A DNA stretch of 63,754 bases, counting the filler, from Ministeria vibrans ATCC 50519 (Eukaryota; Protista; Filasterea): assembly GCA_943704425.1 (NCBI GenBank). It is 9 parts of 9 records of this genome, joined end to end, with 100 filler letters (N's around TTAATTAATTAA, not from the genome) between each part and the next. Parts side by side here need not be neighbours in the genome. Positions count along the whole stretch, not along the records: positions 1 to 17,283 come from CALSCP010002647.1; 8 more parts are not named here. The stretch is one strand, 5' to 3'. Both the position numbers and the translations under genes were made by a program. Shown here in pieces: positions 1-17,283 of this stretch. How positions within the stretch are numbered: position 1 is the stretch's first letter; the number at the start of each line of letters is the position of its first letter. Below the pieces are notes generated by a model. That model was not told the DNA's origin, did no database searches, and was given only the letters and a program-made list of their open reading frames with translations.

Positions 1-152
1 TCGATGCTGGGTACGATTGGGAAGATAGTGGAGAAGTTCAAATGTCGTTTCAGTGGAGAGTCTTATGACCATTATGCGTCGCACTCGGGGGGGCACAGCG
101 CACCACACACCGGTGGCATGGCGTGTGCGGGGTGCGAGGGAGCGGTGATGGT

Positions 153-186
<34 letters not shown>

Positions 187-474
187 CGAGAGAGAGACAG
201 TCCGATCGAAACGATTGTTCTTTAAACTCCTGTCCACTCACCTGATAATGCTCGGGGGATCTAAGGGTGCCTATGCGGACGGGAACGATCAAATAGCAAA
301 AATAATTTATATTATATTTTAGATTTTACTATTTAGATTTTACTTTAATACTTTTTATATTCAATATTAATTTGAGATTGAGATATGTGTCAATATTGTG
401 TGTGAATTGAAATCACACAATTTTCAAAGTCTCATCATTGTTCCAAACAAGTAAACATAAAACAAGTTGTACAA

Positions 475-2534
475 TCATCGACCTCGGCCGCGTCCACCCC
501 TGCCGCCGCCACGTCCACCACCACTACCACGCCCCCTTCCCCCGCCACGACCACCACCACCACCACCACCGCGTCCGCCACCACTTGACCCGTGTCGCTT
601 AGGGGCCGCATCAAGAGCGTCTCCGTCGTCGTCGTCGTCGCCACCCCTGCCGCGTTTCCGACCCCCTCGAGAGTCGGTAAATTCGCGCAATTCCTGCAAA
701 ATACACAAGCCAAGAGGGTGAGTTCACAAAAAAGGCAACAAAAAATAAAACGCAAAGTTGAGCATACGCGTTGGGCATGGCGCTGCGCTTCTTCAACGCG
801 CTCACGCAAGACCATTGCTTCGGCTTCGTTGACTGGGAACTCGGGCATTTTGAGGCCGATGAGTCCCTCAATACGTTGGAAGAGCTCCTAGAGAGAGAAC
901 ACAGTTGTCAAATAAAATGAGCGCCAAAAGACAGAGAGGCAAGACGAAAGTGGGAAGGGGGCGATTCGTACGACGTCGTATTGGCTCAGGATGGTGACAG
1001 AGATGCCGGCACGACCCGCTCGAGCTGTGCGTCCTACACGGTGGATGTAGTCCTTGCTGTGGTTGGGCACGCTGTAGTTGACGACCACGTCGACATGCGG
1101 AATGTCCAGTCCACTGTGCACGGAAGCAAAAGAACAGGCAAAAATAGAATGAGTGGGGGAGGGGGTGGATGGCAAGTGAGGAGCGTGCACTGTTGCGTAC
1201 CGACTGGCAACATCCGTTGCAATGAGAATCGACCGTTGCTGGTCTTTGAACTTGTTGAGCGCGCCCAATCGCTTAGGCTGTGTCATCTGGCCGTGCAGAG
1301 GAATAGCAGACATACCCAGATTGCGCAGCAAATACGCGAGTCTGTGCAGCAGCAAATTGAGAATCATAGAGAAAGAAAAGAGCGACAGTGAGAGGAGGAA
1401 GAAGCACAAGTGGGGTGTGATAGAGTACCGCTGAGCTTCTTTGCAGAGATTGACAAAAATGATAGTGCTCTTGTTGGCGAGTTCTTCGTCGATAAGCAGA
1501 TGGGCAAGGTAAAGATCCTTGTACACGGCCGGCTTGAACACGTACGTCTGCTTCAGCGTCTTCACCGTCCCGTACTTGCTGCTCACTTCCACCTTGGCTG
1601 GGTTCCGCAACGACGCCCGCTGAAGCTTCGCCACCTAAATTACCATCCATAATGCACAGGTGTCATTGTTGATAACACGCAAGGCGACCAGAAATAGAAA
1701 GTAATCAAAATATCGGACCTTGCTTGTCATGGTGGCACTGAAGAGGAAGGTGTTGCGCTCTTTGGGAATGCACTGCAGAATCTTGTTGATTTCCTCTTCA
1801 AACTCCATGTTCAACAGTCGATCGGCTTCGTCCATTACAAGATACTGCGTCGCAAGAGGATGAGCAACAAAGAAGAAGGAAGAACGCAAAGTTGGGCGCA
1901 AATGACTCACTTTGATGGCACGCAAGTGAAACCCTTTGGTGTTCTCGAGATGATCCACGATGCGGCCAGGGGTTGCCACGACAATATGAGGCTTCTTGGC
2001 AAGGGCCACCGCCTGTGACATGTTGTCGATACCGCCCACAATGGTCGCTGTGTGGCGAGAAGGAGGCGTGTGAAAAGAAGCCGGCACACTGATGGCCGAG
2101 CGAATTGTGACATACCACACTTGAGGTTGATGGAGGCCCCGAGCGCTTCAAACTGCTGGCTGATTTGCATCGCCAACTCTCGAGTGGGCGAAAGGACAAG
2201 GGCGTAGAGAGGATGGATCTTGTCGGAGCACAGGAGAGACTGGAAAGAGAGAAGGAAAGAGAGAAGGAAAGGTGAGTGGTGCACCGACGGTCTTCCGTCT
2301 GCTCTTCGCTGGCCCTACGTTGAGAATGGGCAGAACGAACGCAGCCGTTTTGCCACTGCCAGTCTCTGCAAGTCCAATGAGGTCGCGGCCCTGGAGGCCA
2401 AGCGGAATGGCTTCGCTCTGGATGCGCGTGGGTGTCTTGAAGCCAACCGCTTCGCACGCGTCGCACAGCGGCTTGCACAATCCCAACGACTCAAACGTCG
2501 TCGTCACCTCTTGTTCGTCAGGGATATCAGTCAT
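475..2534 (-). CDS. DDX47: DEAD-box rRNA-processing helicase DDX47/RRP3 (multi-exon)
   Basis: Spliced exons give the Q-motif (GFKTPTRIQ), [54 protein letters not shown] and [13 protein letters not shown], ending in an RGG-rich tail. Confidence 0.93.
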
Positions 2535-2662
2535 AGAGAGAAAGGGGAAAAAAAGAGGAGGGTGGCGAGACTACTACGAAAGAAATCAAATGAACTTGAG
2601 AGTTGAGATTTTCACTTTTTACTTTTCAATTTTCACATCATTAATTTTTATTCACTTCATAC

Positions 2663-3705
2663 ATGGCTCGTACGAAACAAACCGCGCGAAAGTCCACAGG
2701 TACTTGGTGTGTCATTCTTGCGTCTCTCTCTGCCCCTTTTTTTTCTTTTCTTTCTTTTCGCTTTTGACGTTATGCAAGCACGAACTTGCCTTGACGCCAT
2801 CTGGTGTGGGGCGTGACTGCACGGGGGGCTTTTGCACACTCTCGGCGGTGACTTTGTGGCAGCGTGCGTTGCGAGGGGACTGAGGGGAGCAGTGAATGAG
2901 CAATGCGAAAACGGTTGTTGGAACGGAGTTGCTCGTTGCGGGAGAATGGCGCGAAGGGCGTGTTGGAGCGGGGTGTGGGGGGGGTTCCCTGCCTGCCCGG
3001 GACATGTGGGGCGCCCCAGCTGCGTCCGTTGCTGCTGTTGGGCAATTCCAACGCACTTTGACACTTTTGACTTTTCTCGGCGACCGAGACGTCCACCTGC
3101 CACACACTGCGTTGGCACTGCAATCGCCATTCGTTGCAGCGAAACACCACTAGACTGCACATGGGCAGATTTTCCATTTTCGAGCAAATGCTCTTTCTCA
3201 AGTTGTGCCTTGACACGTCGCACCTGCTCGCGCTCCGCCACCGCCTCGGANNNNNNNNNNTTTTTTTTTTTTTTTTTTTCTACTTTTCGTTCTTTTTCGT
3301 TTTTGTGAAACCTCTTTCCTGTGTCTCGTGTGTAGGAGGAAAGGCGCCGCGAAAGCAGCTGGCTACCAAGGCTGCACGCAAGTCTGCGCCGAACCAGGCG
3401 GGTGTCAAGAAGCCTCGTAAGTCAATTTAGAGCGAACGCTCAACGACCTTTTCAATGTTGGCGGTCGACCTTCATGTTTCGCAAGAGCCCTGAGAGAAAC
3501 GCTGGAGGGCGGTGAGAGAGGGAGAGAGAGGAGTCAGTGTGTGTGTGTGTGTGTGTGTGTATTCCAGACAGATGGAGAGGGAGGGGAGTAGGAGAGAAAG
3601 GAGAGAGANNNNNNNNNNNNNNNNNNNNNNNNNNNNNNNNNNNNNNNNNNNNNNNNNNNNNNNNNNNNNNNNNNNNNNNNNNNNNNNNNNNNNNNNNNNN
3701 NNNNN

Positions 3706-3757
<52 letters not shown>

Positions 3758-4200
3758 AACACACGTTGAGAAAGTGAGACGCAGAACAGTTTTTTAACAC
3801 TTTATGTATCTCAGATCGATACCGCCCTGGCACAGTTGCTCTGCGTGAGATTCGACGATACCAAAAGAGCACCGAGCTGCTCATCCGCAAGCTGCCCTTC
3901 CAGCGTCTCGTCCGTGAGATCGCTCAGGATTTCAAGACAGACTTGCGATTTCAGTCTGCAGCAGTCGCTGGTATGCCATTACTTTGTACAGTGCATGTAT
4001 TTATGCCAATGCTAACGCTGCCCCCCCTTTTTGTTTGTTGTTGTCTTGCTGTTTTCTCTGCAGCATTGCAAGAAGCGGCCGAGGCGTACCTGGTGGGCTT
4101 GTTTGAGGACACCAACCTGTGCGCCATCCACGCGCGCCGTGTCACGATCATGCCAAAGGACATCCAGCTTGCACGTCGCATCCGCGGCGAGCGCGCTTAA
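2663..4200 (+). CDS. H3: Histone H3, intron-containing variant (4 exons: 2663-2699, 3336-~3416, ~3815-3970, ~4063-4200)
   Basis: [13 protein letters not shown]|[26 protein letters not shown]|[52 protein letters not shown]|[45 protein letters not shown]. Confidence 0.97.
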
Positions 4201-4255
4201 GTCGCTTCAATAAACAACCTTCCCCCAAACCCAACGTGCCTCCTTCGGAAGCACA

Positions 4256-4287
<32 letters not shown>

Positions 4288-4340
4288 AAAGAGTAGAGAA
4301 AGAAAGGAAATGTAGAAAGAAGAGAGTGTTTTCATACAAA

Positions 4341-6468
4341 CTATAGACCGCCATAAAAGCCCCCTGCACCACTGGAGGGTTTGCCCTTGCCTTTGCCTTT
4401 GCGCGTCCATGCTGGCGCTGGCGCACTCGACGGCCCCGCTCCACCGTCATCATCATCGTCATCATCATCGTCGTCGTCACTGTCACTCTCCGACTCGTCC
4501 AAATCCATCTCCTCATACTCATCATCGTCATCATCGTCATCATCATCATCATCGTCGTCGTCGTCGTCATTTCTCGCTGTGTCGTGCCGTGCAGCCCCTC
4601 CACCATGCCCTGCCGTCTTCCAGTGTTGCTGCAGTGCCTCTGCCAGCACTGGGTTGAACATGTTCCCTTCACTTTCTCCCTCCCCCTCCTCCCCTTCCTC
4701 CGCCTCTTCGTCGTCAAAGAAATCATCAATCGCCCAGAACCGTACCGAACTGTCGTGCGAACAGCTTGCCACAAAGCGCTGGTCGTGGCTCATGGCCATG
4801 CGCTCAATAGGAAAGCCTTCATCGTGCTCGCCCAACACTCCCAACAGCTGGTTGGGCAACACATTGCAAACCCTTCAATGGCAAACGCAACAGTGAGGTA
4901 ATAAAGAGTGTTTATGTCTCGGTTCGCATCAACATACCGAATAAGCCCGTCGTGGCAGCCTGTCGCCACAATCGACTCCGTAATCTTCACCATGGAGTCC
5001 ACCGACGACGGATTGCCAATGAGGCGGTCATTCTGATCGCCAAACTCGTCCCAGTTGAAAATGAGAAGTGCGCCACTCTGCGACCCACACACAACCTTCT
5101 TGCCACGGTGCATCAGCGCCACCGACAGCAGCTCGTCCTCCTGATGGTCCGACCGCACCAGCAGTTTCCTTTGGCGCAGATCAAACACCGACAGTGTCCC
5201 GTCACCGCTCGCCGCCAGCAACGTCTTGTGTTCGCGTGCACAAAAATCCGAAATGTAATCCTCGTTGTCGTCAAAGGTCGCAATCATACGCGTTTGTCTC
5301 GTGTCCCACAGCTGTGCCAAACGCACGTCAGCACCTCAACTCTTTTCCCCTTTCATATCTATCCTACCTTGACCACACCACGGTCGTCGCCCGAGGCCAA
5401 TAGAGTGTCGCTTACTCGCAATAGCGTGTTAATGGGATCGCTGAGAAGAGCATGATAAGTGAGACAAGCAAAAATAAAAAAGTTCTCTCTCGCTCACTCT
5501 TACTCGTGTGCTTTGGGAAGACGAAACCCGACGACTCCCGATTCGACGTCGACAACCTGAAGACTTTTATTTGCATTGCCACAAAAGAGAGCTGTGCAGA
5601 GAGAGAAAATGAGGAGTGGTGCACTGCAATGTCCGCACACCACAAGTACAACAGTACGCACAAAGACACACACCGCAAAGCACAAAGATGTACACCACAC
5701 ATATACAACACTGCACAAAAACACAAAGACGTACACCACACATATACAACACTGCACAAAAACACAAAGACGTACACCACACATATACAACACTGCACAA
5801 AGACGCACAACACCACACTCTCACAAAGACACACACCACAAAGCACAAAGACATACACCACACATACAACACTGCACAAAGACGCACAACACCACACTCT
5901 CACAAAGACACACACCACAAAGCACAAAGACGTACACCACACATACAACACTGCACAAAGACGCACAGCACCACACTCTCACAAAGACACACAAAGCACA
6001 AAGACGTACACCACACATATACAACACTGCACAAAGACGCACAACACCACACTCTCACAAAAACACACAAAGCACAAAGACGTACACCACACATACATCA
6101 CTGCACAAAGGACGCACATCTCACAAACACACACACACACACACCTTTGCCATCCAACGAGAACTGCGCCGCTCGACACGCACGTTTCTGCAGTTGAATA
6201 GAATACTGAAGCTGTGGCGGCTGTGCGGCGGCATAGGAATAGCTGTAGAAGGAGAGAGAGGGCGCAAGAGGGTTCGTTTTCGAAGTTGTGCGTCGGGTGT
6301 CTTACACGCAGACTTCGCCGCTGATAAGGCCGGTGGCGATAATGTCTCGCTCCGGATGGAAGGCTAGCGCAAACGGCACCGAGCTCACTACGATGGGGGC
6401 GGGCGGTTCGAGTTCCTACAGCACAACAGGACATGAGGAGAACGCAAGAGAGTGAGCGGTACCGTCAT
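4341..6468 (-). CDS. WDR55: WD40-repeat protein WDR55/JIP5 (multi-exon, acidic C-terminal tail)
   Basis: Exons read LAFHPERDIIATG, FSLDGK|ALFCGNANKSLQVVDVESG, WDTRQ...EDYISDF...LLAASGDGTLSVFDLR...SDHQEDELLS...GKKVVCGSQSG, VASCSHDSSVRFW, and a terminal GGFYGGL. Confidence 0.85.
5655..6143. repeat. CA-rich ~41-bp minisatellite inside a WDR55 intron
   Basis: Tandem variants of cacaaagacgtacaccacacatatacaacactgcacaaa. The flanking WDR55 exons join in frame across it. Confidence 0.85.
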
Positions 6469-6731
6469 AGCGCAAAGGCGGGCAGGGGCGGCCGCGAAGA
6501 GGGTTCACGCTTCAAAGTATGGCGACTGAGTGCCAGAAGAGAAGGAAGTGAGTGAGTGGAATGTGAATGACCAAGTAAGAATGACTTCTCCTTCTCAATT
6601 TCAATTTTCACTTCAGAAAAATAATAATCATCACTTTTTTCTTATTCTTTCTTGCTCGCTGTAGTGATATCGGGCTTGCATATCATTAAGACTCAACATC
6701 CAAGCCGCTTATTAATTAGCATTATCAGTGG

Positions 6732-8007
6732 ATGACTGGCGTTGTAGTGGAAGAAATAGTGTTTTTGGGCACAGGAACGAGTTCGCAAGTGCCAACGGTG
6801 CACTGCCTGACAGCCGATCGGCCGTCATGCACGACATGCGTGCGCTCAATGCAGCCGGGCGATCGCAACAGACGCCGCAACACGTCCCTTGCGCTGAGAA
6901 TACGGCCGGATCATGGTGCTGGTGAGTGCGACGGAAGCGTCAAGGGGACTCGGCGTGACCCGTTGCTGTGTGCTTGCTGTAGACCGCCTGTCGACCATCC
7001 TCATTGACTGTGGCAAGTCCTTTTACGAAGCCGCCATTGCAGTCTTCCCCGAGTGCAAAATACGCTCAATCGAGGGCATTATTTTGACACGTAAGGACAA
7101 TTGCCATAATATACATTAACAACACAAAAATAATTGTTAACCTACTCTCTCTCTTGCAATAGACGAACATGCGTACGCGGCAAGTGGGAACACTCGTACT
7201 AATTAATCTAATTAATATGAGGTACTTTTTTTTATAGAGACGCAGTTTTAGGACTGGATGACCTACGAGACTTTACACTCCATGGACAGGTTCAGGTACG
7301 CTCATGAGTATATTATTCGTATTCAAAGGCCAAGATTGTGATTATGATTCTTATGACGATTGCCAATTTGCCATAGAGTCACATTGATGTTTACCTCACA
7401 AAAACAACCCAAAAAACGGTGCAAGCAACCTTCCCGTATCTGGTCGATGCGTCTCTCTCCACCGGCAGTGGACTGGTGTCCGATCTGCGTTTTCACGTCT
7501 TCGATGAGCACACGCCACTCACTGTCGCCAATCTCGAATTGCTCCCTTTGCCCGTCCCGCACGGTCGAGGCTGCACAAACTTGGGGTTTCGGTTCCAGAA
7601 CGTTGCTTACATTGCCGATTGCGAAGCAGTGCCCGACGATATTGTTGAAAAGGTAGGCGAAATAGGACCAAACCACCGCCTGACACTGGCACCTCATCTT
7701 GTAGATCAAAAACATAGATTTGCTCATTCTAGACTCGCTCAAATTTGAAGCGGACGTCAAGTCGCACTTGTCGTATGGCCAGTCACTCGATGTGGCGAAA
7801 CGCGTCAAGGCAAAGCGGACACTCTTTACAGGAATGTGTCACCTAATGGAGCACTACGCAACGAACGAACGCCTGCGTGAGCACGAAAAGGCAACTGGCC
7901 AATGGATTCGTCTTGCGCACGACGGACAACGAGTTCGCCTTGCCGATGTGGTCTCTGGCGCGGGCGATGCCTTGGGACGCGCGGGAGACACCAATGATCA
8001 AGACTAA
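6732..8007 (+). CDS. Metallo-beta-lactamase-fold hydrolase, PhnP-like (multi-exon, includes a 10-nt exon at ~7163-7172)
   Basis: IVFLGTGTSSQVP, NRRRNTSL and ILIDCGKSFY; the spliced motif LT|HEHA|DAVLGLDDLR; then LPVPHG, AYIADC, SHLSY and TGMCH. Confidence 0.88.
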
Positions 8008-9007
8008 TAATAATAATAAATTTATTCTGAGTAACATCATAAACTTTGTTGTCGGGTTGTTTCACACGTTGGCATTATGTGCGAGTGGTGCCTGATGTGT
8101 GTGTAGCGTAATTTTTATTGGTCTATTTTTAAAGCTTATTGTTACAGAGAGGCTAAACTCTTATTGCATATCTTGCCTTCAAAGATTTTATCTCATTTGT
8201 CCTTGTTGGGGATGGTGGCTCAAATTTGATTTGTGATTACTTTTCCGTTCGCCAGTTTGGCAACCTTAATCAAATTCAATTGTAGGGCAAAGGAAGGGCA
8301 AAGTCACAATTCGCAAAGTATAATAATTATAATTGAATGGAGGTCATACTCAGGAACCACCGCACATCCGTTTTATCGTCTGTGGCGGGCAAACTGTGGC
8401 CCTGTCAAAGTCGAAGAAGCCAGCGAGGTCACTCTCTGTCTGTTTTCTCTTCGTCAATTTCTGNNNNNNCAGGAACCACCGCACATCCGTTTTATCGTCT
8501 GTGGCGGGCAAACTGTGGCCCTGTCAAAGTCGAAGAAGCCAGCGAGGTCACTCTCTGTCTGTTTTCTCTTCGTCAATTTCTGGACATATATATTTTATAA
8601 TAATTATTATTATTATTAATTATTAATATTTTATTCTGTCTTTCATCTGTCTTTTCTTTGGCTCAATTGTCGTTCGTTTGTCGTTCAAACGAAACTTCTA
8701 AGGCATCATGAAAGCAGAGAAAGTCAGTCTGACAGACACAGGCACGAATCACTATCTAGTGAAGTACTGGTACGCCACAATGACCAACGTAAGAAAGATA
8801 TGGAGGAAAGCGTTTAATGAAGTTATACTGAAGTTATACTGATGAATTCATTCGAAACAACTTCGAAACCCCCATCAGCTTCTTCGTTAGCCTCTCAAAG
8901 AGTCGGGGTCGCAATTGCAGCCATACACGCCGCCATACAGGTCCCTTGAGCCGCAGAGCACACTACATCAAACGTCTATAACTTGAAACCTTTCCGTAGT
9001 CAGTCAC

Positions 9008-9841
9008 TTACGTGCGGGTGCACTCGTCCACCAAGCGATCCAGCCAGACCTGTTTTAGCGTCCAGGCCTCGTGCTGTGGCCCCTGGTTGCTCAGTTTCAG
9101 GATCACCTTGAGGCTGTGTGCCAGCGTGCCGACACCATCGTCAGTGATGGAGTTCGGGTTGAAGGGGCCCTGTTGGCGCATGTCGAGGATACCCTCTGTG
9201 AAGCCAAGCAGAGAGAGCAGTTGTTTGATGGACGTGACAATCTCGTGTAGGTGCTGTCCGCCGTCCACGGATAGGTCAACTCGCGCACAATGCCCTTCAA
9301 GCTGCTCTGGGCTCTGAATCATTGCGAGAAAGTGGTCGAGGTGCTCGTATTTGCGGCCGCCCCAGTGCTTGATGAACTCGTTTGTTGGCTCGGCGATAAG
9401 ATAAAACTGCGAGCGCAACAACATCTGAGCCCTCTGCCTGCGGTCGACCTCGTCGGCGTTTCCGCGCTCGATACGCCTGCGGACACCGTCTGGATCCTCG
9501 CTCTTGTGTGTCGCCGCCAGCTGCGCCACGTCCACCATGTAGTGCTCTTGTTCTCCGGCGCGCACGTACAGTGCCCATAGTGCATTGGCCGACTCGCTCT
9601 TGATGCCGCTGGAGCCGTAGACCACTCGGAAGCCGGTCCAGGCGAGCTGTGCAACCAACAGTGGACGGAAACGGTTCTTTGCCGCGTAAGTCTCGGCCAT
9701 GTTGTACACGATCGCGGTGGCGAGAGGGGCCAGCTCGGGGAGTGTCAGCTGGATTGCACCTGTAGCATTGAGTTGGGGTCGCTGTACCGGCACGAGATGG
9801 TCAAATTTCAACACAACAGACACCACGAACACCACACACAC
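9008..9841 (-). pseudogene. Intronless ORF fragment, tentatively the C-terminal region of an origin-binding (UL9-like) helicase family
   Basis: The patterns YNMAETYAAKNRFRPLLVAQLAWTG and RRRIERGNADEVDRRQRAQMLLRSQFY resemble, from memory, the helical tail of giant-virus/mobile-element origin-binding proteins. No helicase motifs are visible. Confidence 0.3.
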
Positions 9842-11223
9842 TCAACTGTACAACCCATACACGTACTGTTCGGATTTATGTTTTCGCAGAAGGCGGCACA
9901 CTGAGAACTTAGAAAAGTAGTGAGCTGTGAGCAGGCCCGCCAGGCCGTTCGATCTTGAGCTCTCAGTCGCCGAGATCACCTCACTTCGCCGCTCTTGCCC
10001 ATGTATTTTTTCTATTCCTTTTGTGCCTTTTTAGCTTGGGCACTTTTCCCCATCTACCTCTTCTAAGAGAAATCAGAAAAAGTGCCCAAGCCGATTTCTC
10101 CTGATGGCAAAATTGTTGGCAAAAAACAACAAAAAACAGGCTCATGACTGACACCACTCAGTCTCTTCCTTTCCCTAGCTTGCTCAAACAGGCAGAGACA
10201 CACACGCACATTCATTCTTTGTTCAATCACACACACATGGACACTGCAATACAGAAGTGTATGCAAAATGTCTCCTGCACTCCACTTTACAAAAAAACAA
10301 CCTAACCCTAACCCATTGTGAAATCTGCAAGTGTTCGCTTCGCCGGCACCGTCTTAATGGGTATCGTGTGTGTGAGGGAAGAGGGTGGAGACTGGGTGGT
10401 GCTTGATGTGACTGTGCGTGTGCACTTGGCCGGTGGGCGCTGCGGAGTGTGTTTTCGGGTGGCGAGAGCGGTTGTGTGGTTACTGCTGTCGCCGTCGAAA
10501 GCAAACGACACGTCGGCCTTTTGAGGTGTGGAAGTAGCTTTTATGGAGGCCGGTGTGACTGAGGTGCTGGTTCTGTCGAGTGAGCGAGCAATTCGTATTC
10601 GACCCTCTCCTTTTCACGATAGTGCTCTGGTGCGGCAACAATATCCAATATCCAATGGGCGAAAGAGAGGGAGAGACATGTCAAAGGGACTCGTAGGCAC
10701 AAGCACAGGTGCCCCACGCCACCCCCATCGCAGACTGCGCGTCTGGTCGCAGACTCGCCCGCGCAAACGATACAGTGTCGCCATCACTTGCTCTGGTCGT
10801 TCTTCGTTCCCAAACACGTCCACACGAATCATGTCCTCACCCGCGTTGAGGCGCAGTCGCACCGGAGCACAACCATCCATAAGAAGTACATTGGTGCATC
10901 GCTGTGTTGCTTGGATCGCACCCCCCGCCAGACTCTCCCGCCACAGTGCCACCATAACCAAGTATCTCACCTCGAGAGATTGGGTGACCAAATGAATTCG
11001 AAGCGAAAGGCAAAGTGGAGGTCAAGAGAACTCGTTAAACTTCCTTCATTGGCGTCAGCAGGGGTTTCTCGCCAAAGAACGATGTCGCATCACCATAAGG
11101 GAGAGATCCGTCTGCGGCAAGGTCCTTGTCGGCGAGCACGGAGACAATGTCGTATCCGTTAATGCCAATCGCTGTGTTGCAAAAACAACAAAAAAACACC
11201 AAGAGAAGGCAATCATTTTCTGC

Positions 11224-12179
11224 TTATTTGATCAGTTTTCTCACGCTAAAACTGCCCGGAGATTTGCCGCCGTAACCAAGCGTTTGCAGAGGGCCTCTCT
11301 TGGCGTAGAGGTCGATGTCACCGTCTGCTGTCAGTGTAAATGGTAGTATCACTGGTTTTGAAGAAACGTATCCGTAAAGAACAAATGCGCTGGAGCTGGA
11401 GCTTAAAGCCATAGAGGCCAGAGAACTGATTCTGAAATTGGTTAAGAGGGTGTCATTTCCGCGAGGAGTCCCATCTGTCGCACTGACAAAACGAATGCAC
11501 ATTGCTGACACGCCACAATAGAACGAGAACGCCAGATGACCCCCGATGAAAAGCGGGGAAAACCCACCACTTCGAACGTAATTCGAGCTCAGAATGCTCA
11601 GAGACCCCATCGTTCCGTCTTCGTTGATAATTCGTGAAGCCAAACCTGTAGCTGGTGGCATGTATGTGTTATCGTATGTCACTGGCCACACAACAAGAGC
11701 ACTACCGTTTAAGAGCCCGAATAGTTCTCGTGTAAACCGAGTTTCCAGTAGCGCCTCGGATATATCGACAGGCTCGGGTAAAATGAGTTGTCCGGTACGT
11801 GTAATTATTTGCCCGTACACGGCACCAAAGAAAGTGTTCTCATATGTCGAAGAATCAAAGAGGTAGCCAATATCTTGGCGAGATTCACTGCCAACAACAA
11901 GAATATTGCCTGAGTTCTCGAACAAATGCGTGCGCGGATCAAATCTTGCCGTTGAAGAACGATTTGTTCTTTGAAATACTTGACTCGATAGACCAACGCG
12001 GAACCCAGTAGTGTCAACAACTTGAGCATATAGACAGCATATTTGGCATCGCCCACTGGTTCCACTCCATTCTCTGTATGCCACTGCAAGCTGCACTGAA
12101 GCAGCGTCTCCTGCTCCCGACCATACGGACACAGCGCCTTCGATCCTGTCGGTGTGAAGTACGACAGGGGCAGGGACAT
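11224..12179 (-). CDS. Hypothetical beta-strand-rich protein, head-to-head with the LRR gene
   Basis: 302-aa open frame with protein-like composition. The overlapping 5' ORF suggests an intron or frameshift. No recognisable motif. Confidence 0.45.
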
Positions 12180-12324
12180 GGGGATTGGGGGAGCCGTGGG
12201 TGGCGAATTGAAGTGATCTTGGCTAGGAGGAGGTTCAGCCAGGTTGATCGAACAAAAACGACCCTTTTCAAAAGAAAACAGTCAGATTAACACCAATCTT
12301 TATCTGTTTCTTTGTCGCCAAAGC

Positions 12325-15300
12325 ATGTCTTCACTACAGGAACGCATTCAAGCCGCGCAGACGTCCCATTTCTTGAACCTGAGGGAGATGGGGCTCAGTT
12401 TACTCCCAGACGAAATTCTTGTTCTTGCTGACACTCTACAGGAATTGCTGTTGACAGACAACCCGCTTCGCGTGCTCCCCAACTGGATCGGACAGTTCAA
12501 GAAGCTCAAGGTATGGGAAGGGGGAGAGAAAGGCCAGGATTTCTCACGAGTTGGCTCGTTTTTTTTCTTCTTTTTCTGGACGAAGCTTCTGGACGTTGGG
12601 AATTGCAACCTCAAAACGCTCCCAACAGCCATTTTAGATTTGCGTGGGCACCTGGAGGAGATTACGTACAGCGGGAATGAGGGATTCTCGCCGTCTCTCA
12701 ACAATCTCTGCGCTAGTAAAGGGAGATTTTTTTGGTTGACGAGAAACTGAAACGCGAATTAATGTGGGGGTGTAGAAGGTTTGAGATAGACTGGATGATT
12801 GCTTCATTTGATTCTAACTCTTTTATCTTGCGCTTCTTGGCGTGGCAATGTCGGGCGACTCAGTTTGTAAGAAGGGAGTTTTTGTACGATTTTGCTAACA
12901 CTCCCAACTTTGCAGATTGTAAGATGTCAAGAATTGAGTGTATATCTGACACCATTTTCGCTCGATTCGATGCTCTTTGCTATTTGGTGTAGGGTGTAAG
13001 TTTGAAGAATGGATGAAAATGGATGGTGACTGATTTGGACTGTGATTTGGACTCTTCTTTGCGTTGTTTTAGTTGGTAAGTTTGAAGAATAGATGGGAAT
13101 GGATGGTGACTGATTTGGACTGTGGTTTGGACTCTTCTTTGCATTGTTTTAGAGGGTAAGTTTGAAGAATAGGTGGAAATGGATGGTGACTGATTTGGAC
13201 TGTGGTTTGGACTCTTCTTTGCATTGTTTTAGGGGGTAAGTTTGAAGAATAGATGGAAATGGATGGTGACTGATATGGACTGTGATTTGGACTCTTCTTT
13301 GCATTGTTTTAGTTGGTAAGTTTGAAGAATAGATGGAAATGGATGGTGACTGATTTGGACTGTGGTTTGGACTCTTCTTTGCATTGTTTTAGTTCGTAAG
13401 TTTGAAGAATAGATGGAAATGGATGGTGACTGATTTGGACTGTGATTTGGACTCTTCTTTGCATTGTTTTAGGGCGTAAGTTTGAAGAATAGATGGAAAT
13501 GGATGGTGACTGATTTGGACTGTGATTTGGACTCTTCTTTGCATTGTTTTAGAATGTAAGTTTGAAGAATAGATGGAAATGGATGGTGACTGATTTGGAC
13601 TGTGATTTGGACTCTTCTTTGCATTGTTTTAGGGGGTAAGTTTGAAGAATAGATGGAAATGGATGGTGACTGATTTGGACTGTGATTTGGACTCTTCTTT
13701 GCATTGTTTTAGGGCGTAAGTTTGAAGAATAGATGGAAATGGATGGTGACTGATTTGGACTGTGATTTGGACTCTTCTTTGCATTGTTTTAGTTGGTAAG
13801 TTTGAAGAATAGATGGAAATGGATGGTGACTGATTTGGACTGTGATTTGGACTCTTCTTTGCGTTGTTTTAGACAGTAAGTTTGAAGAATAGATGGAAAT
13901 GGATGGTGACTGATTTGGACTGTGATTTGGACTCTTCTTTGCATTGTTTTAGGGTGTAAGTTTGAAGAATAGATGGAAATGGATGGTGACTGATTTGGAC
14001 TGTGGTTTGGACTCTTCTTTGCATTGTTTTAGTTGGTAAGTTTGAAGAATAGATGGAAATGGATGGTGACTGATTTGGACTGTGGTTTGGACTCTTCTTT
14101 GCATTGTTTTAGAGGGTAAGTTTGAAGAATAGATGGAAATGGATGGTGACTGATTTGGACTGTGATTTGGACTCTTCTTTGCATTGTTTTAGAGGGTAAG
14201 TTTGAAGAATAGATGGAAATGGATGGTGACTAAATTGGACTGTGGTTTGGACTCTTCTTTGTATTGTTTTAGAATGTAAGTTTGAATAATAGATGGAAAT
14301 GGATGGTGACTGATTTGGACTGTGGTTTGGACTCTTCTTTGTATTGTTTTAGGGGGTAAGTTTGAAGAATAGATGGAAATGGATGGTGACTGATTTGGAC
14401 TGTGATTTGGACTCTTCTTTGCATTGTTTTAGTTGGTAAGTTTGAAGAATAGATGGAAATGGATGGTGACTGATTTGAGNNNNNNNNNNNNNNNNNNNNN
14501 NNNNNNNNNNNNNNNNNNNNNNNNNNNNNNNNNNNNNNNNNNNNNNNNNNNNNNNNNNNNNNNNNNNNNNNNNNNNNATAGATGGAAATGGATGGTGACT
14601 GATTTGGACTGTGATTTGGACTCTTCTTTGCATTGTTTTAGTTGGTAAGTTTGAAGAATAGATGGAAATGGATGGTGACTGATTTGAGCGGGTTGAAGAG
14701 GGTGAAGAGGACGAAGATGACGAAGGGAACGAGAGGAGAGACGACGTGGACCGTCGCTCTGACTGCTCATCGTCACTGTCCGACACTTTGGACCGGACGC
14801 ACGACGACGCCTTTGCAACCGCTCGACAGTCAGTCTATGATGCCATTCTCTTCGAGTGTAGCAGCGGGCTTGCCGTCGACAACGACACACTTCTCGCACG
14901 GCAGGTAGAGAGAGCCGACGGTGAGCCTGTTGTTGTGCTCTTCGTCGACGACAAAACACCTCAGGGAGCCGACGGTGAGGCTGTAGCTGTGCTCGGTGGC
15001 GACGACCAAACACCTCACAGAGCCGACGGCGAGCCTGTGGTTGTGCTCTCCGTCGACGACACACTTTGCGCACGGCAGGTAGAGAGAGCCGACGGTGAGC
15101 CTGTGGTTGTGCTCTCCGTCGACGACAAAACACCTCAGGGAGCCGACGGTGAGGCTGTAGTTGTGCTCGGTGGCGACGACCAAACACCTCACAGAGCCGA
15201 CGGTGAGGCTGTAGTTGTGCTCGGTGGCGACGACCAAACACCTCACAGAGCCGACGGTGAGCCTGTGGTTGTGCTCGGTGGCGACGGCGGCGCTCCCTTG

Positions 15301-15928
15301 TGGACAGTGTGTGTGGACTTCCACACTTGCTCTGTCTCAGTCAGCGTAACTATGCTATTTTCTTCGTAGCCAGCTGATCCGATCGTCTTCTGTGTAGAAC
15401 GACAACTGTACCTACTTCACGCCGTTTCAGCTCAACCAGACAAACGCGGCGAGTGTGGCCTACTGCTGCATCCTGTTCATCTGCTTCTCCTGTGACTGGA
15501 AGGCAGTACCTCTCGGACAGATGCAGTCCTTCTCCGCGTCCCTCACCGACTCGCTGTACGAGCTTGTGCGTCTGCGGTACGGCGAGCACCGGTGTCGTCG
15601 AGCGAGGCTAACCAACCGCATGCTCACGCGGACCGAGTTGCACCCTCACGAGACAGTGGTTGTACGACGCGGTGGTGGAGAGATCGAGTTCTTCGTGCTG
15701 CTGCATGTGGCGATGGAGCTACCTACACTCGAGATAGTCCACCGCACTCGGCACAGACACAAGCGCTACTGCGATCTGCGCACACCCTGGCAATCCATCC
15801 ACTCCATTGGCGTCGAGCATGCGACCAAGACAATCGTTGGCCTGTGCGACAAGAGCTCGGTCCTCGATGCTATGTTTCGTGTGTGGCGCAAGATTGATTG
15901 GCAAATCCGCACTCCAGCCTTTACATAA
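12325..15928 (+). CDS. Subtelomeric LRR protein: LRR N-terminus, microexon-encoded segment, acidic linker, 18-aa repeats and an unknown C-terminal domain (predicted model)
   Basis: Exon 1 (12325-12510) has LNLREMGLSLLPDEI and LQELLLTDNPLRVLPNWIGQFKKLK. Exon 2 (12586-12715) has LLDVGNCNLKTLPTAILDL. The AG-NNN-GT series follows, then an open frame from ~14689/14699 to 15306, and a phase-0 GT..AG intron (15307-15397) joins in frame to the ORF ending at 15928. The LRR part is secure; the downstream joins are inferred. Confidence 0.6.
12993..14688 (+). repeat. 80-bp tandem array, each unit a 77-nt intron-like repeat plus a variable 3-nt microexon
   Basis: Unit GTAAGtttgaagaatagatggaaatggatggtgaCTGATttggactgtgatttggactcttctttgcattgttttAG + NNN. 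There are 18 full units before the N gap, with triplets at 12993+80n. Confidence 0.95.
14905..15290 (+). repeat. Coding tandem repeat (~54 nt, 18 aa, about 7 copies)
   Basis: ADGE[P/A]VVVL[SVDDKTPQG/GGDDQTPHR] units within ORF 14746..15369. Confidence 0.85.
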
Positions 15929-16214
15929 ACACTCTTTTCTCTTGTATTATTCTTTTTCTTGCCTGCACTCTCTCCTACCTTCGCCCTGCTCCAGAATGCG
16001 GCGATGGGCGGCATTGGGCCCAAGGCTTACGTTGTCATTGTGGTGGCTGTGGTTGTACTCCGTAATCTTCCTATCCTTCAAATAAGTCATGCATGGATCG
16101 CTTTGAGAAGTGACGGGTGCGTAAGCGAGTTACCTTCTAAGATTGAACATCAGAGCCAAGTGAGAGGGGTGGCGCAAGAAGACTTTCGTCTGACAAACAC
16201 GCAGAAATCCAAGC

Positions 16215-16710
16215 TGATGGCGAACAGAGATCAGTCTTACTAATGGTTGGCTCACTCGACTGTCCGTTGAGGGGTGTCCAGGGTATCTCTAGGGAAAATC
16301 GAGCACTTCGTCTGGCTAGCAGAAATCAAGTCTTACTGATGGTGGGCTCCCTACTCCGTAGACTGTCTGGGCTGTCCAGCGTGTCTAGGGAAAATCGAGC
16401 ACTTCGTCTGGCTAGCAGAAATCAGTCTTGCTGATGGTTGGCTCACTAACCTGTCCGGGGTGTCCAGCGTGTCTAATGAAAATCGAGCACTTTGTCTGGC
16501 GAGCAGAAATCAAGTCTTACTGATGGTTGGCTCACTCGACTGTCCGGGGTGTCCAGTGTGTCTAGGGAAAATCGAGCACTTCGTCTGGCTAGCAGAAATC
16601 AGTCTTATTGATGGTTGGCTCCCTACTCCGTAGTATGTCCGGGCTGTCCAGCGTGTCTAGGGAAAATCGAGCACTTTGTCTGGCGAACAAAAATCAGTCT
16701 TACTGATGGA
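16215..16710. repeat. Subtelomeric ~90-bp tandem repeat, about 5 copies
   Basis: Recurrent tctagggaaaatcgagcacttcgtctggctagcagaaatcagtcttactgatggttggctc core. Confidence 0.85.
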
Positions 16711-16924
16711 GTGATGGTGCCTAGATATTCTTCTTCTTCTACTTTCCTGTTGTTTTTTTGATGTATTGATCATAATAATTTCGTCTTGAAACGGCCCTGT
16801 AAATCTCGCTTCATCTAAATTCCTTCTTGTTCTTTCTTTTTTTTATCTAAGTACGGAGTATATTGATATATAAAAACTGTTTTAAGGCCTTAGTGGGAAT
16901 GGGGCGACTGGCCGAGGAGTGGAG

Positions 16925-17148
16925 AGGAGTGGGAAGGGGAGATAGGGCTGGGGAGGACCTTCCCTGCTTGAATTTGGGCAGAGGGATTGCGCTCCTTCTC
17001 TGCTCGAATTTGGGCAGAGGGATTGCGCTGGGAAGGGGAGATAGGGCTGGGAAGGGAGATAGGGCTGGGGAGGGAGATAGGGATGGGGAGAGCGATTGCG
17101 CTCGGAAAAGAAGATAGGGCTGCGGAGGACCTTCTCTGCTCGAATTTG
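16925..17148 (+). repeat. G-rich telomere-associated degenerate repeats
   Basis: Repeated gggagatagggctggg and gaatttgggcagagggattgcgct motifs immediately proximal to the TTAGGG tract. Confidence 0.7.
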
Positions 17149-17283
17149 GGGTTAGGGTTAGGGTTAGGGTTAGGGTTAAACGTCTGAATACAATCGTAAA
17201 GTTCATGTCTCGGTTAGGGTTAGGGTTAGGGTTAGGGTTAGGGTTAGGGTTAGGGTTAGGGTTAGGGTTAGGGTTAGGGTTAG
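17149..17283 (+). repeat. Telomeric (TTAGGG)n at the contig end, interrupted by a 33-nt non-telomeric insert
   Basis: Five GGGTTA units at 17149-17178, a spacer at 17179-17211, then a continuous TTAGGG tract at 17212-17283 running into the gap, with the G-strand oriented 5'->3' toward the end. Confidence 0.93.

Follow-up and report, generated by a model that had tools for sequence, protein, structure and literature searches.

Evidence for a chain of consecutive 3-nt exons between tandemly repeated introns in a leucine-rich repeat gene of Ministeria vibrans

Known systems and the intron array

To our knowledge, exons of 3 nucleotides (nt) are known only as isolated rarities which need special help for recognition. 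Here we describe an array of near-identical introns in a leucine-rich repeat (LRR) gene of the filasterean Ministeria vibrans ATCC 50519, in which exons of exactly this size very probably follow one another: a run of ordinary GT-AG introns, each succeeded by a 3-nt exon, from which all introns are removed and the exon pieces are placed end to end in the mRNA. The window, that is, the whole stretch of DNA analysed, comprises 63,754 nt in nine joined parts from GenBank assembly GCA_943704425.1, and the array lies in the first of these parts (positions 1 to 17,283, record CALSCP010002647.1).

The present case combines features of several known systems at an extreme. Schistosoma micro-exon genes (MEGs) contain exons of 3–81 base pairs (bp) (PMC10526429). 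The likeness to these genes is that their coding region consists largely of very short exons in multiples of three, in which gain, loss and skipping preserve the frame, and that the products are variable, MEG products being largely disordered. However, MEG exons are mostly longer than 3 nt and their introns are long (up to 5 kb) and not reported to be near-identical, whereas here each of 20–40 successive exons measures exactly 3 nt and the introns between them are short (77–86 nt), near-identical and strictly tandem. Runs of short symmetric exons are found in both systems but the long, non-repetitive introns of MEGs are not found here, where intron length is 65–92 nt across all arrays and the sequences are near-identical. 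In addition, the chain of 3-nt exons forms just one internal segment of an LRR/GTPase-type protein. MEG proteins are secreted. In spider silk genes (flagelliform and Argiope MaSp), introns are homogenised and unequal crossing over between introns has been proposed to drive repeat turnover (PMC9779670). Iterated exon-intron units with homogenised introns are common to silk genes and to this locus, but a silk exon is a whole repeat module of many codons while the piece observed here is single and of codon length.

For brown-algal (Ectocarpus) LRR-ROCO genes, two reports propose that repeated exon-intron units create receptor diversity (PMC3341825, PMC11378527). The resemblance to that system, also a multi-copy family with LRR and Roc-COR-type modules, is one of likeness only and does not imply homology. 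The unit shuffled in Ectocarpus is reportedly a whole LRR exon of about 72 nt, whereas in Ministeria the LRR part does not vary and repetition affects a 3-nt exon in a linker behind it. Amphioxus 'mirages' are unstable minisatellites which duplicate exon-intron boundaries and are ignored by regular splicing (PMC3087553); these are likewise intragenic minisatellite units carrying AG and GT signals, but the units described here are spliced, each leaving 3 nt in the mRNA. Two further reports document recognition of single 3-nt exons by the spliceosome in animals and plants (PMC8632122, PMC8831610), those exons being isolated between long, unrelated introns whereas the exons here are consecutive. 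Full-text literature searches retrieved no account of 3-nt exons in direct succession, nor of spliced, near-identical introns arranged in tandem.

The anatomy of the array is highly regular. Tandem Repeats Finder reports a repeat at 12996–14477 with a period of 80, 18.5 copies, 95% matches and 0% indels. Each unit is composed of a 77-nt intron and a 3-nt microexon, the microexons being positioned at 13073+80n, and the intron accounts for 96% of the unit. GTAAGT at the 5′ end, an invariant CTGAT, a pyrimidine-rich tail and TTTTAG at the 3′ end are present in each unit of the window. In column counts over the 18 full units, the three triplet columns between TTTTAG and GTAAG carry a non-majority base in 9, 9 and 7 units, respectively; intron column 50 (A/G) does so in 7 units and the remaining intron columns in at most 2. 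Mean pairwise diversity per site in the window is 0.656 for triplets versus 0.0235 for introns, a difference of approximately 28-fold. Repeat finder, column counts and diversity combined confirm the original prediction, made from the sequence of the window, of an exact 80-bp array in which nearly invariant 77-nt introns enclose 3 variable nt between AG and GT. Its placement of the array on the sense strand of the LRR exons holds, and its catalogue of 19 triplets plus one past an assembly gap, of 8 distinct kinds, is reproduced exactly. Across all arrays, including those in paralogues, units fit U2-type GT-AG introns, starting with GTAAGT and ending with TTTTAG or a near variant, and CTGAT sits in a block conserved across all three intron subfamilies, in which a pyrimidine-rich tail is also present. 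Recursive splicing, in which AG abuts GT and nothing is left, does not describe these sites as three bases lie between the signals and are kept in RNA.

The features of the gene as far as the edge of the gap are as follows; the runs X1, X3 and X5 are introduced in the next section.

12325..12510, plus strand: exon 1, with the start codon and the first LRR-type repeats, 62 codons (open frame from ATG; conserved in paralogues)
12511..12585, plus strand: intron 1, 75 nt, GT..AG (missing from the RNA contigs of X1, X3 and X5)
12586..12715, plus strand: exon 2, 130 nt, phase 1 end (RNA match with 0 differences; length sets the phase)
12716..12995, plus strand: region of four single-copy introns, 12716-12775, 12779-12863, 12867-12915 and 12919-12992 (from the sequence)
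12776, 12864, 12916 and 12993, plus strand: single-copy microexons AAG, TTT, ATT and GGT, respectively, each 3′ of one single-copy intron (order read in X5 RNA)
12996..14479, plus strand: 18 full 80-bp array units, with a further, truncated one bordering the gap (period, column counts and RNA contigs)

The microexon chain does not depend on the repeat, as the four single-copy introns upstream of the array also have 3-nt exons between them, and this layout of single-copy introns and 3-nt microexons recurs in five paralogues. The chain, which had been predicted to start at 12993, consequently begins 217 bp earlier, at 12776, with the first of the single-copy exons. In the window, the run of consecutive 3-nt exons is at least 22 long, four single-copy and at least 18 from the array. 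Upstream of the chain, exon 1 has a weak Pfam LRR_14 match under the curated cut-off. A protein search with the read-through open reading frame (ORF) of exons 1 and 2 detected one unspliced environmental fragment as its sole match and a search with exon 2 alone returned no match.

Triplets in RNA and the reading frame

Splicing of the triplets is observed in assembled contigs. The RNA data consist of contigs from two runs of organism A, X1 and X3, and a 2011 run of organism B, X5, with X9 as a DNA run of organism B. Two introns, intron 1 and one of 52 nt (GT..AG, 15346-15397), are absent from X1, X3 and X5 while X9 shows neither junction, and the first three runs therefore behave as RNA. In contigs of all three, the 3′ end of exon 1 is joined to exon 2. 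X5 record 18 (223 nt) reads from the end of exon 1 through 12583-12715 with 0 mismatches and continues for a further 78 letters, of which the 30 compared are the window's first ten triplets in genomic order. This chain supports the proposal that the 3-nt pieces are real exons joined serially in mRNA, and a search of RNA for spliced k-mers, suggested along with that proposal, is positive in that contigs hold the first ten triplets in order. X3 and X5 each contain the last four triplets of the paralogous C915 array followed by two further microexons and the C915 downstream exon, and each also contains a chain from the C73 array. In X1, exon 2 of a paralogue is joined to that paralogue's first microexons. 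In MEGs, protein variants arise by alternative splicing of the microexons; the contigs inspected here follow the genomic order of the triplets (contigs drop rare forms).

Removal of the introns is precise, the triplets abutting in the contigs, and the joined form is not present in the genomic DNA assembly. The window's spliced chain was not detected in the 29.7-Mb assembly at up to 2 mismatches, so that the contigs are not accounted for by a processed DNA copy. Partly spliced contigs occur in both polarities, with the retained intron lying either after a chain or before one, which suggests that there is no strict direction of intron removal.

These contigs bear directly on whether the triplets are exons at all. 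Tandem duplications of exon-intron boundaries which regular splicing ignores are known (PMC3087553), and the array could similarly be a minisatellite of the amphioxus 'mirage' type within one large intron or untranslated region, its unit ends being copies of a single exon-intron boundary and its triplets never present in mature RNA; skipping of the whole block would also preserve the frame in full-length paralogues. Triplets are, however, joined in order in RNA contigs from this locus and two paralogues, and an inert intronic minisatellite is excluded as these contigs carry the triplet chain. Furthermore, the exon piece is 3 nt in 164/164 units parsed across the arrays while intron length varies from 65 to 92 nt; indels are tolerated in the introns but never in the exon piece, which indicates constraint on the spliced product. 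The single-copy microexons are also conserved at the amino-acid level, and overall we regard a mirage-type origin as highly improbable. A second possibility is that triplet variation reflects assembly or consensus error in a collapsed repeat, as the array is misassembled around the N gap. The 2011 run, which is taken as independent of the assembly, nevertheless reproduces ten consecutive triplets exactly and the same pattern is found in eight arrays, so that such an artefact is barely credible.

Exon 2 ends with one base of a codon, and the downstream exon of full-length paralogues, which leads in frame into the P-loop exon, needs two bases. With phase 1 thus set on both sides, codons are predicted to straddle the junctions: judged from the sequence, each codon takes its first base from the end of one microexon and its other two from the start of the microexon after it. 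The original prediction of a protein segment written one codon-length exon at a time therefore stands with respect to the 3-nt exons but not with respect to each exon being a whole codon, as phase 1 splits the codons. In this phase, the single-copy microexons encode [KR]V[FY]W in six paralogues (KVYW, KVFW, KVFW, KVFW, RVYW and KVYW). Both codons of Val, Phe and Tyr are used in this motif, indicating synonymous changes, and the phase-0 reading is not conserved. The 3′ side of the chain is V[DG]RAQWK-like in six paralogues. Stop codons number 11 in phase 2 and one in phase 1, the latter in the 5′-truncated C312 copy.

The triplets were initially thought to vary freely. This is not borne out, as 28 kinds are found among the 164 triplets, none of which ends in AG and only 2 of which start with GT. 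A is rare at the second triplet position, and each array has its own triplet vocabulary. A triplet ending in AG would offer a competing 3′ splice site and the avoidance is therefore read as a splicing constraint.

Several observations weigh against a fully spliced, coding chain. All RNA evidence is derived from assembled contigs for which the RNA label is a tool's guess, and contigs cannot reveal abundance, completeness or the absence of skipped forms. Just 30 of the 78 chain letters of record 18 were displayed, no contig was seen to reach the end of the window array, and the window's own copy of the gene is broken. Avoidance of stop codons in phase 1 is weakly significant, with one observed versus 2.8 after shuffling, and is suggestive; codon-usage likelihoods for the variable part give phase 1 no advantage over phase 0. 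The coding role of the chain is predicted from its frame and conserved flanks. The predicted intron fold is not better than that of shuffled sequences (z = 0.41), and no unusual structure is predicted which could account for recognition of the introns. Finally, runs of organisms A and B agree exactly at the chain ends of two arrays, indicating that change is not fast on that time scale.

Short introns are recognised by intron definition. Adjacent introns of the array would probably be removed one after another in this manner, since neighbouring splice sites lie just 3 nt apart and factors bound to neighbouring sites should exclude each other. If serial splicing of the chain is correct, the spliceosome faithfully processes dozens of consecutive 3-nt exons, an outcome not predicted by current steric-limit ideas. 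The array would then provide a natural substrate for the question of how neighbouring spliceosomes operate, including the succession in which introns are removed, intron definition and accuracy across dozens of steps at 3-nt spacing.

Paralogous arrays and their turnover

Seven further arrays, of 8–40 units, are present in paralogues, giving eight arrays in total. A genome-wide search for the 77-nt unit in paralogous arrays with different triplet orders had been suggested, and such arrays are found on C915, C73 and C43, with 38, 32 and 40 units, respectively, and with a distinct vocabulary in each. Diverged units of 85–86 nt form the arrays on C1600, C1260, C312 and C1049. The number of consecutive 3-nt exons reaches about 46 in paralogues. 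In a genome-wide pattern search, the AG-3 nt-GTAAG arrangement is concentrated at these loci and occurs elsewhere at chance level. Metagenome scans detected no match for the conserved intron core, nor for the intron end together with a microexon.

Triplets are 15–89 times more diverse than introns in 8/8 arrays, with triplet diversity of 0.56–0.71 per site across arrays. The 77-nt consensus differs at 1–3 of 77 positions between four loci while the exons and single-copy introns of these loci are 85–91% identical, indicating that the array introns are homogenised both within and between loci. Compared with shuffled orders, the triplets of paralogous arrays gave no sign of collinearity; neighbour pairs do not recur in excess, and a higher-order repeat signal was not detected. 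Gain and loss of single units, together with exchanges of at most one triplet, fit this lack of collinearity and repeated pairs whereas recent block duplication does not.

Loci of the family are frequently truncated, at least 4/9 being so affected (the window, C312, C2596 and C1600). On C2596 (L034, 2640-3400), a broken copy has the LRR exons, the four single-copy microexons and just one 77-nt unit, past which unrelated repeats begin. On C1600 (L035, 3250-4560), the array of a broken copy is cut off within a unit.

Near-identical introns at several loci could also be expected if the units were a mobile, introner-like element which had inserted repeatedly. Every copy, however, lies head to tail in arrays of one gene family with exact spacing. 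Furthermore, the triplets on either side of an intron differ, and thus there is no target-site duplication; terminal inverted repeats and a stable fold are likewise absent, and we consider repeated insertion a very unlikely origin.

More weight is given to the possibility that the chain, while spliced and coding, is an old, loosely constrained, low-complexity linker in which short-tract gene conversion homogenises the introns and the triplets are old and saturated, to which we attach somewhat less than an even chance. The triplet diversity is near saturation and far above the 9–15% flank divergence of paralogues, a contrast which old triplets inside recently homogenised introns fit. The lack of repeated neighbour pairs and of collinearity is expected if exchanges copy at most one triplet, and the identity of chain ends in runs of two organisms is in agreement. 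In contrast, array lengths of 8–40 units and separate vocabularies among close paralogues require unit gain and loss and not conversion alone, and conversion would be expected to make the triplets uniform too, unless their differences are maintained by selection.

The following processes may underlie both the uniform introns and the variable triplets of the spliced chain. Misaligned exchange or slippage between near-identical introns would add or remove 80-bp units without frameshift, conversion would keep the introns alike within and between loci, and selection on the product, on splice-site avoidance or on both may keep the triplets different. Because each 80-bp unit gives one codon-length piece, gain, loss or exchange of a unit would change the protein in frame. 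A codon-length piece per 80-bp unit separates repeat instability at the DNA level from the risk of frameshift. Unequal exchange fits the data as a putative route by which codons are added and removed.

A further proposal, which we consider possible but doubtful, is that the array is a minisatellite read by the spliceosome, acting as an in-frame generator of codon cassettes which rapidly diversifies a segment of a candidate LRR/GTPase receptor, possibly with variable inclusion of microexons. Recombination between near-identical introns, within and between loci which are mostly subtelomeric, would in that case add, delete and exchange codon-length exons. A role in receptor variation is a reasonable hypothesis since the arrays occur in a multi-copy LRR/GTPase-type family and lie partly next to telomeres. 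As standard gene finders and RNA aligners cannot see such exons, similar arrays may hide in other sequences as 'intronic minisatellites'.

Downstream protein module, truncated copy and chromosome end

In full-length members of the family, the chain would encode a variable, aromatic- and glycine-rich stretch of about 15–45 residues, preceded by a short N-terminal LRR domain and followed by a coiled coil with a P-loop GTPase/COR-like module. In these paralogues, the exon after the chain is coiled-coil-like; a P-loop GTPase region carrying a long insertion comes next, and then a 536-amino-acid ORF. P-loop, DxxG and THxD-type motifs are readable in the ORFs of the C73 paralogue. The Pfam match to Roc, at E = 0.17, is below cut-off, and the window copy is without the GTPase part. 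Pfam gave no COR hit for the downstream module and a PDB sequence search gave no match for the ORFs tested. In language-model comparisons, the look-alikes of the 536-amino-acid ORF are clusters with COR-A and Roc (score 0.96, 200/256 features, ten best hits in agreement). We call the family ROCO-like, the Roc/COR assignment being a candidate only.

Other sequences related to the module were also observed. In the window, an ORF at 10614-10991 on the minus strand is 61% identical to the C-terminal part of the C73 COR-like ORF and looks like a fragment of another family member, placed head to head with the LRR gene. On C73, a caspase-like gene (L032, 1293-2153, minus strand; Pfam Peptidase_C14, E = 1.6e-05) lies directly downstream of the GTPase/COR-like gene and, past it, a second LRR start with a diverged array is found at the contig edge. 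Homologues of the GTPase/COR-like module, 52–88% identical, are present in environmental ENA contigs L043-L046. Sample names of the environmental contigs, like the run records, indicate a marine microbe, and genes for light-harvesting proteins were not detected. WD40 repeats lie upstream of the module in the three environmental contigs read, of four fetched, and in L043 are joined directly to the P-loop exon. The triplet array is present in 0/4 environmental contigs and no tandem repeat was detected in the two checked by Tandem Repeats Finder. The arrangement of these contigs suggests N-terminal domain swapping in the wider family, with WD40 in place of the LRR and array.

The 3′ part of the window copy consists of the following features.

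14480..14577, no strand: assembly gap (N) (flanks identical over 111 bp; RNA triplet neighbours missing from the assembly)
14578..14688, plus strand: partial unit, TTG microexon (14641-14643) and truncated last unit (exact copy of 14369-14479)
14689..15345, plus strand: part of an unrelated acidic gene with 54-bp repeats, to which the broken array is joined (paralogues on C43, C2043 and C312; not the family's normal 3′ end)

The gap has exactly the same 111 bases on its right (14578-14688) as on its left (14369-14479), and the right-hand piece contributes no independent sequence because the left edge already ends in the truncated unit of the true array end. In RNA contigs, the last assembled triplets are followed by ACA and GGT, a neighbour order not found in the assembly, and a joint recorded as 'goes back 692' is present in two runs. 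The identical gap flanks and the differing RNA neighbour order indicate that the array is under- or mis-assembled and that its unit count is unreliable. The frame is independent of the gap as each unit contributes exactly 3 nt.

Homology to the array ends at 14685-14688, within a unit. At the place occupied by the array in the window, the paralogues of the acidic gene on C43, C2043 and C312 extend upstream as coding sequence of their own. Read in phase 1, a stop codon lies 8 nt past the junction of array and acidic gene. Because of the break in the array and its fusion to part of another gene, the product of the window copy would end just after the chain. The original assignment of the array to an LRR gene thus holds, but this copy is not intact: it is a truncated, chimeric, subtelomeric member of the family which is nevertheless transcribed and spliced. 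Perfect GGTTAG (TTAGGG-type) telomere repeats end the piece at window positions 17149-17283, placing the array approximately 2.5 kb from a chromosome end.

Further repeats were noted in the vicinity. The acidic fragment, at 14689-15400, contains a tandem repeat of period 54 in 6.7 copies, also detected with period 174, and its 52-nt GT..AG intron at 15346-15397 is spliced out in the three RNA-like runs. The acidic-gene paralogue on C2043 (L041) lies approximately 1 kb from a CCCTAA run. Window positions 16218-16709 and 16958-17122 are occupied by subtelomeric tandem repeats, of period 89–95/184 bp and 18/36 bp, respectively, and RNA-like contigs show variable joints inside these repeats. Further upstream in the window, a perfect 119-bp tandem duplication is located at 8351-8582 and a CA-rich repeat with a period of 79 bp at 5659-6118.

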